From NCBI GenBank assembly GCA_002104945.1, contig MCFH01000016.1:744001-808000 (forward strand): 64,000 nucleotides of DNA, read 5' to 3'. The notes beneath the pieces were generated by a model. The model was given only the letters and a program-made list of their open reading frames with translations, did not search any database and had not been told where the DNA came from. Positions 225 through 30,343 of this stretch are shown one piece after another; position 1 is the stretch's first letter; every line of letters starts with the position of its first letter. Made by a program: the position numbers and the translations under genes. This DNA is from Piromyces finnis finn (Eukaryota > Fungi > Neocallimastigomycota).

Positions 225-851
225 TTAACAATAGTGATTTCTTTTATCTCTACTTCCAATGTTTGTTTTAGCAAAAAATACAGCAATTGCAATTATTAAT
301 GCATTATCAACATCAGATGCCATTTCAATAGAATATCTACTTTCAGTATCTATTAAGAATGAATTTGCATCCATTAATTCAACAATCTTTGCAACCATTG
401 GTGAACCTTCTTTTTCTTTTCCTTGGAAGATTCCACATGATCCAAAAAATCCATCACAATTCATATCAAGAACTTCATTTTTTTCTGTTGCTTGATTGTA
501 AAACTCAACAGAAAACTTGATGGCAACAGTGGAATTCTTTGGAGTAATAGTAGCTAAAATATCTTTATCATCTTTTCCTTTATAGATTTTTGTTTTAGAA
601 GAAAATAATTTTTCACGAAAATTAAATAATGGTTTATTGTTATTATCATAGACAACTCTATAGGAATCACCTTTATTACATTTGAAATATTCAATCCCAT
701 CACTACCTACAAATTTAAAATCACAATCATTTGTTTCTGGATTATCAATTAATAATAAATTCATATATTGTTTAAAGGTAAATCCTTCAAGAACACTGAT
801 TTCATTTTTTGGTTGAGATACAATTTCCGAATTGTAAGTTTTTAATTTCAT
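225..851 (-). CDS. LURP-one-related/Tubby-C-like protein (array copy 1, extended-tail subtype)
   Basis: 208 aa intronless ORF. Has the array motifs YFKC, GIFQGKEKEGSPMVAKI and YSIEMASDVDNALIIAIAV (beta-rich body plus C-terminal hydrophobic helix). Confidence 0.75.
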   Translation of the reverse strand: MKLKTYNSEIVSQPKNEISVLEGFTFKQYMNLLLIDNPETNDCDFKFVGSDGIEYFKCNKGDSYRVVYDNNNKPLFNFREKLFSSKTKIYKGKDDKDILATITPKNSTVAIKFSVEFYNQATEKNEVLDMNCDGFFGSCGIFQGKEKEGSPMVAKIVELMDANSFLIDTESRYSIEMASDVDNALIIAIAVFFAKTNIGSRDKRNHYC

Positions 852-1921
852 ATTTGATTATTTTTTTTTTAAAAAAAAATTAAATACAACAAAAAGTATT
901 AAAATTAATTTTTATTCATTTATTTATAAAAAAATATTAATTTATTTTATATTTTTTTTAATTAGATAAAATATTTTTTTAAAGTTGTACAAGGTGAATA
1001 ACTTTTTCATATTATAATAAAATGTTAATAACTTTTAAGAGAAAGATACTTTAAATATCTAAATTATTTATATATTTTTTTTTCATTTCCCATTCATATT
1101 TTATTTTATTGCTTTGATTTTATTATAAATAATTAAGCAAAATCTAATTGTTATTATAATGTTAATAAAATATTAAAAGCAATTTTAATTGTGATAATAA
1201 TAATGATAAATTAATGTATTAGAAGAAAAAAAAATATGGAATAAGAAAAATGATAGCCACTTTATCATTTTTATAATTAATTAACAAATAAAAAACATTA
1301 TGGTTTACTTGTATAAAATATGATTTAAATACTTTTTTAATATCCTAATATAGATTTTCTTTTTATTATTATTGTTATTATTATTATCTTCTATTGAATA
1401 TATTTATAATTTTTTTTTAATTAACTATATTATTAAAATCATTTAATCCTCTATTTTATTTTATATACTAAAAACCATTTTAATATAAAAGAATGAATAT
1501 TTTATTGTGAACTTATATATAAATAATTAAAGAAAAAGGGAGATAAGAAATGTTTTATTTACTCTATAATAAAATGTATAATTATTTGCTTTTATATTTG
1601 TATATTTTAAAATTTTAATTTTAAATTATTTTTACATTAATAAAATAAATATATAATAAAACAAAAGAAATAAATTATTTATCATAAAAGTATATACAAT
1701 AAATTATAACAATTTTTTTTCTTTAAAAATATTAATAAATCATATTTTAAAAGATTACTAATTTTAATAGATAACTAAATATTTGTATTTTACCATTTAC
1801 AATTATTAGTGTTTTGATTAATTTAAATATACAATTATTATTATTATTATTATTATTATTATTATTATTATTATTTTCATATTATATTATTGCGTTTTTT
1901 TTTTTTATTTATTTATTTTTC

Positions 1922-2527
1922 TTATTCTTTCTTTAATTGGTCGAAACAAATGGTTGCAGCGACAATTAAAGCAATATCAACACCTGGTGCAATTTCGACA
2001 TAATAATTACTTTCTGATGATAAAATTGACGCATTTATTTTTCTTGTAATTTTACAAACCATTGGAGCACCTTCTTTTTCTTTACCATAGAAAATACCAC
2101 ATGAACTACCCATTATATTACATTTCATATCAAGGAATTCATTCTTATCTTGTGCTTGATTAAAGAATTCTAGGGTATATTTATTAAGATTCATCATATT
2201 TTTTTGGTTAATTGTGGCAATAACTTTTTCAGAATTACTACCAAGATATATTGTTGATTTATCTTTAAGGGATAAAAGTTGATTCTTTATATTAAGTATA
2301 GGTATTTCGTACAAGTCGTATAAAACTTTTTTATCGGTAATATTTAAAGAATTTCCTTTACATCTGAAATAGTCTCTTCCTTCAACATCTTTAATTGTAA
2401 AATCTTTTGAAGACAAAGATAATTTAGTGTTAATCACAAGAGTAATAGGTTTATTAAATACAAAACGACTTTCTACAGCAACAATATTATTTGGTGGTTC
2501 AATAACTGCATTATCTTGATAACCCAT
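1922..2527 (-). CDS. LURP-one-related/Tubby-C-like protein (copy 2, canonical subtype)
   Basis: 201 aa. SSKDFTIKDVEGRDYFRCKG...KKVLYDLYEIPILNI at the N-terminus and YYVEIAPGVDIALIVAATICFD at the C-terminus match my recollection of LURP/DUF567. Confidence 0.85.
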   Translation of the reverse strand: MGYQDNAVIEPPNNIVAVESRFVFNKPITLVINTKLSLSSKDFTIKDVEGRDYFRCKGNSLNITDKKVLYDLYEIPILNIKNQLLSLKDKSTIYLGSNSEKVIATINQKNMMNLNKYTLEFFNQAQDKNEFLDMKCNIMGSSCGIFYGKEKEGAPMVCKITRKINASILSSESNYYVEIAPGVDIALIVAATICFDQLKKE

Positions 2528-3442
2528 TGTATTTATTTTTTATTCAGTTAACTTAATTTTTTTTTTATATTTATATATCATATCACAAATTAAAAATTTA
2601 TAAAATTTTTAATATTATACCAAAGTTTAAAAAATAAGTATTTGATTTACTTTACTAATATAAAATATATATTAATAAGATTAATAAGGATTAAATATAT
2701 TTACAACCTCTAACAAATTTGAAGATTTTTCTAATTTTTCCTATTAACTTTTCATTTGGTATTAACTCAAATCAACTACAATTTTACAATAAAGAATGCC
2801 GAAAAAATTATTAATTATAAATCGTTATTATTATTCTAACTATTACTAATTAGTAATATATTTTTATTTATTATATTTGGAATATTTGGTTTGTATTTTA
2901 ACCTGTAAAAATTATGGTTCATTATTTAAAATGTAAAAAATTATAATAATCATTTACTATATTTAATATTTTTACTTTTATTGTAAAAAAAAAAAAAATT
3001 ACTGTTAAAATATGTATATGTATATATATATAGATTTGTATCTTCCGTAGTTTAAAAGGGAAACTCTATATAAATAATAATATAACTTAATAATGTGTAT
3101 TTTATTAATTATCAATAAAATTTGATATTTTAAAAATTTAAATTTATTTTTACATTTATATTTACATTTATATTTAATAATACAATAAACATTTATTTAT
3201 AAGATTAACATTAACATTTCATTTTCAAAAAAAAAAAAAATATTATTGACAATGAATATTTAATATTATTAATAAACAAGCTATTTATTAATAACATTTA
3301 ATAGTTTGAATAATTAAATATAAATTAATGTATATTTACAAAAATTGAATATAATTACAACTTAAAAATACAAATAATACAGTTTTTTTTTTTATTATAA
3401 TAATTATCTAATATTTGATATAACTGCTAAATTGAAATGAGA

Positions 3443-28061: not shown

Positions 28062-28988
28062 ACCAAAAATTAATATTATTATTTAAAAAATATCAATGAA
28101 AATTAAATTATCTATATTTTAACATATCATAATATCATAATATCATAATTATCTATATTATTATCCGTCAAAATATTATTTATTATTTATCATAAAAAAT
28201 AGCATACTTAAAAAATCTATCAAATACATAGCAACATTTTAAATATATATTATTTTTTCTTTATTTATCGTCAAATATATATTTCTTATACCTATTTTAT
28301 TATTTTTTTTTTTTTTAAAAAAAAAAAGAAAATAATTCTTTTAAAAATAAAAAAAAAAAGTTATATCGTTCAATAAAAATAAGGAAATAAATAAATTCCA
28401 ATTAAAAACTTTTATAAAAAAAAAAAAAGTTATTAATATTGAAGTGTGTAAAATTATTTTATTTAATACTTGTTTAATATTCGTTGGTTATATTTTTGAA
28501 ATTATTTTATTATGTATTTTTTAATTATTGTAATTTAAGAGTTTGAAAATATCTAAAATTATAATAATATTTATAACATTATTAGTGGTGGTAGAGATGA
28601 TAATATGCATAATTCAATAATTGACAGTCAGGCATTTTATATTTTACCCCCCAAAATATATATATATATTTATTTTATTTACTTTTTATAAATACTTTTT
28701 AAATCCTATTATTAGTACTAATATTTTAAAAATAAAGATAACCATTTATTTTTATTCAATAAAAATGTTTTTAAAAAACAGGAGAATTGAAAAATGGATG
28801 ATTATCATTTCATATCACCTTCTAAAAGATACTGAAACAATACCTTATTGAAGCAAATTTAAAACTATCAATAATATGAAAAAGAATTTTCTAAATTAGC
28901 CTCCATTTACTAATTAAAATGTGTGACTACTTATTTATAAATATCATAGAAAAAAGAGTATATTTAAAATAATATTAAATCATATGTT

Positions 28989-29170
28989 TTATTATTATTA
29001 TTATTATTATTATTATTATTATTATTATTATTATTATTATTATTATTATTATTATTATTATTATTATTATTATTATTATTATTATTATTATTATTATTAT
29101 TATTATTATTATTATTATTATTATATTATTATTATTATTATTATTATTATTATTATTATTATTATTATTT
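28989..29170. repeat. (TTA)n microsatellite, about 60 units
   Basis: Directly visible; it explains the poly-Y/poly-I ORF 28984..29172. Confidence 0.95.
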
Positions 29171-29770
29171 AAAATTTTTAAATATTCTTAGTACAATAAA
29201 ATTTTGTTATTAAATATAATTATTTAATGACTTTTTTTTTTATTTCAATATATTATATATAATATAAAATTAATATTATACATACTTTGGTTATTAATTA
29301 AAAACCACAATTTGCTGAATTACTAATTAAAAAAATTAAAAAAACGAATTCTACTTTTCTTAATAATATAATATATTATAATACAATCATAATATATTTA
29401 ATAGCATCAATTTAATAAAAATTAAGTTTTTATTGAATTATTAATTGCTTATTGGCTAATAATTGACAGGTTCCCTAATGATTATGTTTTACATTTTAAA
29501 AAAAAAATATAAATAAAATAAAACACCATCAATTTTTTAATTTCTTTGAAAAAAAATAAAACTACTTTTTCAAAAATAAAGAATAAATTTTAACTATTTT
29601 TATTAAAAAAAAAAAAAAAGATAAATATTTAAAAAAAACATTACTTTATAATAGTATTCTTTTTTTATTTAATACTTAAAAAAAAAAAAAACAATACAAT
29701 TCAAGTTGAAAATTTTATAAATAACAACAACACCTAATATTTTTTTTAACAATATAAAAAATCTAAAAAA

Positions 29771-30343
29771 ATGAACTCCGAAATTAATGTTGTCAAGCCA
29801 GAAACAGTTATTTTAACCACTGAAGAACGCTACGTTAAAGATGAAATTACTGTTATGGTATTAAATGATGGAATTTCATTTAATTCTGGTTCTAGCTTTG
29901 TTATTAAAGATATTAATAAAGTGGAATATTTTAAATGTAAGGATAAATCTGTACTTTTTACTGATGGTAAAGTTCTCAAAGATATGAACAAAGTTCCAGT
30001 TATTGCTATTAAAGGAAATTCACATATTTATAATCCTAATAAAAATAAGAAAATTGCTAGTGTTTCCAAGAATGGCTTATTTTCTTCTTCTGTGGGCTAT
30101 GATGTATCTTTTCATAACAAAGCAACTCACAGTAATGAAAATCTTGTTATGAAATATGACAGTAAAAAAAAGGAATGTAATATTTTCTATGGTAAAAATG
30201 AAAAGGCTCCACTTGTGGCAAAAATCCAAAAAAAATCTTCTGTTATTGGAAAAGATAAATATCATCTTACAATTGCTCCAAAGGTTGATATAGCTTTCAT
30301 GTCTACGTTAGTTATTTCTTTTGATGCCTATAAACATGAATGA
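29771..30343 (+). CDS. LURP-one-related/Tubby-C-like protein (copy 12)
   Basis: 190 aa. FVIKDINKVEYFKCK, IFYGKNEKAPLVAKI and YHLTIAPKVDIAFMSTLVISFD. Confidence 0.85.
   Translation: MNSEINVVKPETVILTTEERYVKDEITVMVLNDGISFNSGSSFVIKDINKVEYFKCKDKSVLFTDGKVLKDMNKVPVIAIKGNSHIYNPNKNKKIASVSKNGLFSSSVGYDVSFHNKATHSNENLVMKYDSKKKECNIFYGKNEKAPLVAKIQKKSSVIGKDKYHLTIAPKVDIAFMSTLVISFDAYKHE

Follow-up and report, generated by a model that had tools for sequence, protein, structure and literature searches.

Twelve LURP-one-related loci in a tandem cluster of the anaerobic fungus Piromyces finnis: probably an ancient, largely fixed array

LURP-one-related (LOR, DUF567) proteins form a widespread family whose fold has been solved, and to our knowledge no molecular activity has been described for them. 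The family is multi-copy in Arabidopsis (21; PMC2639001) and in soybean (36 genes; PMC8624885), and phospholipid scramblases belong to the same superfamily (Bateman et al., 2009; PMC2639001). In Arabidopsis, LURP1 and LOR1 act in pathogen response, a role known for plants only (PMC8624885). The array described here resembles the plant LORs in being multi-copy, but it is arranged differently: the soybean genes, according to the survey cited, include tandem pairs and arose mostly by segmental duplication, whereas the fungal genes make up twelve loci in one 30-kb cluster that is kept between genera. Unlike Arabidopsis LURP1 and LOR1, the fungal array has no known link to a pathogen response. Public databases already list its proteins as DUF567/Tubby-C-like, and a literature search on LOR, DUF567 and PF04525 in fungi and Neocallimastigomycota found nothing relevant, in keeping with the initial annotation, which knew of no described function for such an array in fungi.

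The window is the whole 64-kb stretch analysed (64,000 nucleotides of P. finnis contig MCFH01000016.1, positions 744,001 to 808,000). A six-frame profile scan across all of it found LOR-like (PF04525) loci at exactly the twelve places first counted, between 225 and 30343, and no further ones. All are intronless, and the copies are single unbroken open reading frames, with c10 frameshifted; ten of the twelve are intact, c10 being a pseudogene and c5 N-terminally truncated. Three unrelated genes lie within the array: an NhaC-type antiporter gene, an N/M-rich open reading frame and an HhH-GPD glycosylase gene. The copies, with the antiporter and glycosylase genes, are as follows (bit scores are against PF04525 unless stated; orthologues come from the tree described below).

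225-851, minus strand: c1, intact LOR, 208 aa, acidic (pI 5.4), 35 bits; orthogroup with A. robustus 7573-8328 (81% amino-acid identity, dN/dS 0.17)
1922-2527, minus strand: c2, intact LOR, 201 aa, 75 bits; orthologue A. robustus 25448-26062 (support 100/100, dN/dS 0.26)
3443-4099, minus strand: c3, intact LOR, 218 aa, basic C-terminal tail; no Pfam hit alone, 250 bits against the array profile; orthologue A. robustus 30121-30780
5243-7144, plus strand: NhaC/Tet(35)-type Na+/H+ antiporter family transporter (PF03553, 219 bits; NCBIfam)
7781-8434, minus strand: c4, intact LOR, 217 aa; no Pfam hit alone, 268 bits against the array profile; A. robustus orthologue 31990-32685 (support 100/99)
12432-12845, minus strand: c5, truncated copy, 137 aa, profile positions ~67-211 only
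14354-14998, minus strand: c6, intact, of a highly diverged subfamily without GIF.G.EKEGAP; orthologues 55-68% identical, Piromyces sp. E2 11449 among them
17562-18185, minus strand: c7, intact LOR, 207 aa, 73 bits; orthogroup with P. sp. E2 24744-25373 and N. lanati 588239
19727-20353, minus strand: c8, intact LOR, 208 aa, 37 bits; orthologues P0054 (P. sp. E2, 67%) and P0057 (A. robustus, 45%)
22141-22788, minus strand: HhH-GPD DNA glycosylase-like gene (PF00730)
23834-24481, minus strand: c9, intact LOR, 215 aa, nearest the family consensus, 78 bits; orthologues 80% identical in P. sp. E2, 67% in A. robustus and 61% in Neocallimastix
25838-26423, plus strand: c10, pseudogene, sister of c11 (support 100/96)
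27456-28061, plus strand: c11, intact LOR, 201 aa, basic (pI 9.5), 65 bits, 5 residues deleted in the hairpin motif; orthogroup with P. sp. E2 911-1537 and A. robustus 76654-77286
29771-30343, plus strand: c12, intact LOR, 190 aa, basic, 42 bits; orthologue N. californiae 242934-243527 (support 100/100)

The single orientation switch that had been noticed is a head-to-head one between c9 (minus) and c10 (plus). The two motifs that the copies had been said to share hold as a consensus, but they are not strictly shared by all: GIF.G.EKEGAP is exact in four copies, approximate in about five and missing from c6, c10 and c11, while Y..EIAP.VD is exact in four. Paralogues within the array are only 21-47% identical and so have not been homogenised; their pI ranges from 5.4 to 9.7. 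Since no signal peptide or transmembrane segment was evident when N-termini and hydropathy were judged by eye, the products are presumably cytosolic. N-myristoylation (an MG... start) was considered and fits some orthologues of the c11 group, not the copies in the window. The antiporter gene sits between c3 and c4, whose orthologues adjoin in A. robustus, and the best NCBIfam match of the HhH-GPD gene is 3-methyladenine DNA glycosylase, under the model cut-off. There is also a repeat at 28989-29124 of the window.

Assignment of the array to the LURP/Tubby-C-like family and fold, as first proposed, is upheld by three kinds of evidence that agree: Pfam, a profile match to the Arabidopsis protein At5g01750, and AlphaFold models. 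First, eight of the twelve copies exceed the PF04525 gathering score of 24.5 bits (34.7-77.8 bits); the other four (c3, c4, c5 and c6) fall short singly, but the array profile scores them at 136-268 bits. Second, a profile built from all twelve matches At5g01750 (PDB 1zxu) over its full length, with an E-value of 8.7e-24. Third, AlphaFold2 models of two of the twelve copies, c9 (pLDDT 84, pTM 0.87) and the most divergent copy, c6 (pLDDT 90, pTM 0.87), both match 1zxu first in the PDB (E 1.1e-9 and 8.8e-7, respectively) and Tubby/TULP1 next; each model has 12 strands plus a terminal helix, and the target-normalised TM-score against 1zxu is 0.77-0.81. The array proteins thus resemble At5g01750 in being single domains of about 200 aa with, in the c9 and c6 models, 12 strands and a central C-terminal helix, but they are only 17-19% identical to the plant protein and have three residues inserted into the conserved hairpin (KEKEGAP). 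With the Tubby C-terminal domain (Tub, TULP1) they share the barrel-around-helix fold (Foldseek E 4e-5 to 1e-3, TM ~0.5-0.57), a likeness at fold level only: Pfam scans gave no Tub match at E <= 0.01, identity is 8-12%, and the array proteins are smaller, with less elaborated loops and without the N-terminal regulatory region. The scramblase model PF03803 likewise gave no match in the Pfam scans, and the array proteins, unlike scramblases, have no proline-rich N-terminus. In the Atlas, the closest neighbours are LOR clusters of eukaryotes (plants and Ascomycota), and scramblase clusters are among the distant ones.

In a careful maximum-likelihood tree, each of the ten intact copies falls into its own well-supported orthogroup with other genera, the partners coming from Anaeromyces robustus, Piromyces sp. 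E2 or Neocallimastix, and the only within-genome sisters in the array are c10 and c11. Gene order and the orientation switch, compared with three other genomes, are common to A. robustus and Piromyces sp. E2: A. robustus MCFG01000024.1 has the order c1-c2-c3-c4...c8...c9/c11 with the head-to-head switch, and Piromyces sp. E2 KZ150940.1 has c11/c9-c8-c7-c6 in a gap-rich region that is mostly Ns past the c6 orthologue. Orthologue dN/dS is 0.17-0.41 (NG86), rough values because dS is near saturation (0.66-1.3), and 0.09-0.17 by YN00, which extreme AT bias and saturation confined to three pairs. Identity averages 0.68 inside orthogroups against 0.32 between different ones, evenly along the sequence, and no hypervariable patch was seen in it.

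What turnover there is amounts to the c10/c11 duplication, the truncated orphan c5 and the absence of one orthogroup (that of A. robustus 26920-27558, which has no member in the window), together with fewer copies near the Neocallimastix c9 orthologue, where only four LOR open reading frames were found in ~38 kb. The pseudogene that had been reported is c10, which has no ATG, a frame broken by an 8-bp tandem duplication at ~26043-26058 and an in-frame loss of two codons. The supposed recent duplication is the c10/c11 pair; the duplication is real but not young, with ~80% nucleotide identity across aligned 1.1-kb regions including flanks and 63% amino-acid identity. The reported deleted copy is c5, which has lost its N-terminal third (profile positions 1-66), with no homology upstream; it has a long branch in the tree, no orthologue was found for it, and it is probably decaying.

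The best explanation, to which we give a probability of about 0.8, is that these LURP-one-related paralogues form an ancient and largely fixed tandem cluster kept under purifying selection, with a suggested membrane or lipid role. The duplications that gave rise to the ten intact members would predate the split of the sequenced genera, and each member would have persisted from then on as a gene of its own, under purifying selection and free of gene conversion, with unrelated genes entering the spaces between members differently from lineage to lineage; c10 and c5 would be decaying by-products. The products are predicted to be presumably cytosolic proteins of about 200 residues in which a 12-stranded beta-barrel surrounds a hydrophobic C-terminal helix buried within it, as in At5g01750, Tubby and the scramblases. 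By analogy with Tubby and the scramblases, their role would most likely be that of peripheral adaptors binding membranes or lipids. Given that their surfaces differ widely (pI 5.4-9.7) and that each type is conserved across genera, the paralogues have probably split the work among different partners. A bolder version, which we consider rather unlikely, is that about ten surface-diverged Tubby-like barrels, collinear since before the genus split, constitute a phylum-specific membrane- or lipid-recognition toolkit undescribed in fungi; if so, the partners or lipid ligands would number ten, none of them redundant, and the cluster might be co-regulated as a whole. The array by itself opens no long-standing question, and ten long-retained paralogues offer a natural panel for comparative biochemistry, with one scaffold and differing surfaces.

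The initial annotation had favoured a different history, a birth-and-death pattern like that of arrays for host defence or ligand recognition; on this reading, duplication, divergence and loss of copies would go on all the time under diversifying selection. The lineage-specific c10/c11 duplication with its pseudogene, the orphan c5, the missing orthogroup, the variation in copy number between genera and the defence role of Arabidopsis LURP1 and LOR1 (PMC8624885) are all consistent with this. So is a second LOR array of the same genome, on contig C158, whose six copies, tandem, intronless and on one strand, are mutual closest relatives (support 100/100) and thus a lineage-specific burst; the genes related to them in A. 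robustus and N. californiae are located within the main array, adjoining the c9 orthologue. The C158 array is like the main array in family, tandem arrangement and lack of introns, but unlike it in its lineage-specific origin. For the main array, lineage-specific gain and loss do not outweigh 1:1 orthology, as ten orthogroups span genera against the lineage-specific c10/c11 pair and the orphan c5. What was found is largely a fixed array of 1:1 orthologues in conserved order (ten of the ten intact copies) under purifying selection (dN/dS 0.17-0.41), without a visible hypervariable patch. An array that is old, collinear in related genera and under purifying selection is not a fast-changing one of the defence type, and no finding links the fungal genes with defence. 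A tandem array can remain fixed for long, so that clustering and a pseudogene are no signature of defence unless orthology data accompany them. Continual birth and death is thus mostly wrong as an account of the main array, and we judge it improbable.

Horizontal acquisition in the gut accounts for many genes of anaerobic fungi, and the array might have arisen by amplification of a bacterial YxjI-type LOR gene acquired in this way. Some orthologues bear the JGI label “uncharacterized protein YxjI”, PF04525 occurs in bacteria and archaea (controls), and bacterial-type genes lie in or beside the array (the NhaC antiporter, a CatA-like acetyltransferase and the HhH-GPD glycosylase). However, the nearest Atlas clusters, by features as well as by structure, are eukaryotic (plants 0.96; Ascomycota 0.95, TM 0.79) against 0.84 for bacterial rows, the full-length profile alignment is to a plant protein, c9 matches no NCBIfam prokaryotic model, and codon GC3 of the array genes agrees with that of the host genome, all of which makes a bacterial origin highly improbable. 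That the copies are largely redundant, slowly drifting and kept for dosage alone, with no division of labour, would accord with the lack of any known function for them and with omega values of up to 0.41, which are fairly relaxed, but it is barely credible when redundant copies would not be expected to persist as ten orthogroups across genera at 21-47% mutual identity, with identity within orthogroups (0.68) double that between them.

As to expression, the Logan contig L006, which covers the A. robustus c9 orthologue, was set aside as proof of RNA: it runs 100% collinear to the genome, and no untemplated poly(A) occurs in it. Four small runs, whose status as RNA is a guess, come from the organism of the window and include 52-73% of the words found in the c9 region.

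The LURP-one-related (LOR; PF04525 or DUF567) array lies in DNA of about 17% GC (window C68:744001-808000), in a genome of 56.46 Mb and 232 contigs, and the closest protein matches of the window come from Piromyces sp. E2, Anaeromyces robustus and Neocallimastix, which places it among the anaerobic gut fungi, probably in Piromyces. ORF listing and alignment gave twelve homologous loci within the stretch 225-30343 (c1 to c12, numbered by position), and a six-frame scan of the 64-kb window with a profile of all twelve found no further LOR loci. The nine copies c1-c9 are read from the minus strand and the three copies c10-c12 from the plus strand, which sets c9 and c10 head to head; the twelve-locus array with one strand switch is as the initial annotation described it. 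All twelve loci carry uninterrupted ORFs. The reported pseudogene and deleted copy could both be located: c10 has an N-terminal part (25838-26064) without an ATG, a frame shifted by an 8-bp tandem duplication near 26043-26058 and, with c11 as reference, two codons absent in frame, and c5 begins at about profile position 67, with nothing resembling its missing N-terminal part in the DNA upstream. The sole close pair is c10/c11 (about 80% nucleotide identity over aligned regions, 63% amino-acid identity, homology extending into the flanks); every other pair is 21-47% identical.

All copies can be aligned over their length, and 8 of 12 pass the PF04525 gathering score (c3, c4, c5 and c6 fall below it). 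A joint profile of the twelve covers positions 14-205 of Arabidopsis At5g01750 (PDB 1zxu; E 8.7e-24), which upholds the earlier assignment to a LURP/Tubby-C-like family. Structure prediction agrees: the AlphaFold2 model of c9 (pLDDT 84, pTM 0.87) shows 12 strands plus a C-terminal helix and best matches 1zxu (E 1.1e-9, TM 0.81 by target), with TULP1 and Tubby next. Copy c6, which diverges most, is without the hairpin motif and without a Pfam match, and its model folds like that of c9 (pLDDT 90), again with 1zxu as best match (E 8.8e-7). The two motifs first quoted for the array hold as a family consensus, not as strings strictly shared in the alignment of twelve. One maps to a beta-hairpin (GIFYGKEKEGAP) and the other, YxIEIAPxVD, to the final strand together with the central helix cap; both are scaffold elements rather than obvious active sites. 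By eye, no signal peptide is apparent in the N-termini, and the sole hydrophobic stretch is the helix buried in the barrel.

Searches with c1, c3, c4, c6, c7, c8, c9 and c11 returned orthologues from other genera, and the DNA around these was fetched and scanned with the LOR profile. In A. robustus (MCFG01000024.1), LOR ORFs lie on one strand at 7573, 25448, 26920, 30121, 31990, 45650, 66457, 70542 and 73105, together with a fragment at 38884 and a split copy at 41453/41851, and a single ORF, at 76654, is on the opposite strand. Piromyces sp. E2 (KZ150940.1) has LOR ORFs at 911 (-) and at 4488, 20531, 24744 and 40303 (+), and for N. californiae (MCOG01000179.1) the fetched DNA, roughly 38 kb, contains four. 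In a maximum-likelihood tree of 72 sequences, each intact window copy falls in a separate, strongly supported orthogroup.

Orthogroup members from other genomes, by window copy
c1: A. robustus 7573
c2: A. robustus 25448
c3: A. robustus 30121
c4: A. robustus 31990
c6: P. sp. E2 11449 (at 40303)
c7: P. sp. E2 24744; N. lanati 588239
c8: P. sp. E2 20531; A. robustus 45650
c9: P. sp. E2 4488; A. robustus 73105; N. californiae 251924
c11: P. sp. E2 911; A. robustus 76654
c12: N. californiae 242934

The orthologues follow one another in the same order as the window copies, with the head-to-head junction next to c9 likewise shared, and the only within-genome sisters in the tree are c10 and c11 (support 100/96). 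The search of other genera found no orthologue of c5, and the orthogroup of A. robustus 26920 is without a counterpart in the window. One orthogroup per copy, a common order and a common junction mean that the LOR cluster is older than the split of these genera, a radiation that goes back tens of millions of years. The array had been read as the product of defence-like birth and death; with phylogeny and synteny placing the intact copies in cross-genus orthogroups of conserved order, that interpretation is largely refuted on its own terms.

Pairwise dN/dS between orthologues is 0.17-0.41 (NG86), or 0.09-0.17 by YN00 for the three pairs where YN00 converged, values that point only roughly to purifying selection because dS (0.66-1.3) nears saturation in so AT-rich a genome. 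Column-wise identity averages 0.68 within orthogroups versus 0.32 between them, both even across strands, loops and helix; only 3 columns combine conservation inside orthogroups with a difference from one orthogroup to another, and no hypervariable patch was seen in these per-column identities. The paralogues differ strongly in net charge (pI 5.4-6.0 for c1, c3 and c4 versus 9.3-9.5 for c11 and c12).

The LOR profile matches 25 places genome-wide, among them, outside the window:

C158:510985-518299, all minus: second LOR array of six copies (five full-length and one fragment), from the profile search
C68:520127-521317 (L017:325-1464), minus: 379-aa ORF, N-terminal LOR domain fused to a low-complexity tail
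C79:715514-715750: isolated fragment matching the C-terminal part of c1 at 85% identity (48 aa)

The five full-length members on contig C158 form one tight clade, and by BLAST the fragment resembles them most. In A. robustus (66457) and N. californiae (254480), relatives of this clade sit within the main array adjoining the c9 orthologue, which suggests that the group was relocated and then expanded in one lineage; this part of the family has been dynamic in this lineage. The C79 fragment, derived from c1, is a relic of an array member that has become dispersed, and split or stop-interrupted LOR copies occur on contigs C1, C166 and C158. The tail of the fusion ORF is His/Ser-rich, then (GGYD)n-rich (His/Gly/Tyr/Asp overall).

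Vertical descent within eukaryotes seems the more likely origin, because the Atlas clusters that lie nearest in language-model features and in structure are LOR clusters of eukaryotes (plants and Ascomycota), with bacterial and archaeal clusters lower in rank, the profile gives a good alignment to a plant protein, and c9 has no match to an NCBIfam model. The ten intact genes encode predicted Tubby-like barrels, each kept across genera and without an evident signal peptide. LOR proteins are not known to have any activity. Tubby and phospholipid scramblases, which have the same fold, associate reversibly with membranes (PMC2639001). Purely by analogy, the array proteins would most likely be peripheral membrane- or lipid-binding adaptors with specificities divided among paralogues, because they have this fold in common with Tubby and the scramblases and differ from each other mainly in surface charge. 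The link of LOR to defence in plants (PMC8624885) is not transferable to them. Four small sequencing runs from this organism include most of the c9 region, their status as RNA being a guess. The proteins have existing database entries that label them DUF567 or Tubby C-terminal-like, and literature searches found no paper on them in fungi.

Three unrelated genes interrupt the array:

5243-7144, plus: NhaC/Tet(35)-type Na+/H+ antiporter family gene, 633 aa (PF03553, 219 bits), between c3 and c4
10734-11336, minus: candidate gene, 200-aa N/M-rich low-complexity ORF, mostly (NM)n repeats, with a Pro-rich N-terminus, no Pfam match, between c4 and c5
22141-22788, minus: HhH-GPD glycosylase-like gene (best NCBIfam model a bacterial 3-methyladenine DNA glycosylase, below cut-off), between c8 and c9

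Such insertions vary by lineage: the transporter and glycosylase in this genome, a GPCR-like gene and M3 peptidases in A. robustus, CotH and an oxidoreductase in P. sp. E2. Since the c3 and c4 orthologues adjoin each other in A. robustus, the transporter is a bacterial-type gene inserted in this lineage specifically, possibly by horizontal transfer. The fetched A. robustus and P. sp. E2 regions showed no HhH-GPD gene at the corresponding place. Directly beyond the array, a CatA-like O-acetyltransferase (33303-33944, plus; NCBIfam CatA_like_1, 114 bits, below cut-off; PF00302) counts as a further bacterial-type gene. A short-word repeat lies at 28989-29124. An intact-looking LINE ORF (35828-40102, plus; 1424 aa, endonuclease and reverse transcriptase) differs from its 17% GC background with a GC content of about 35%, and a DM9-repeat protein (PF11901; 47352-48299, minus) carries a long Gly/Pro/Gln-rich (GGPQGGF)n N-terminal region.
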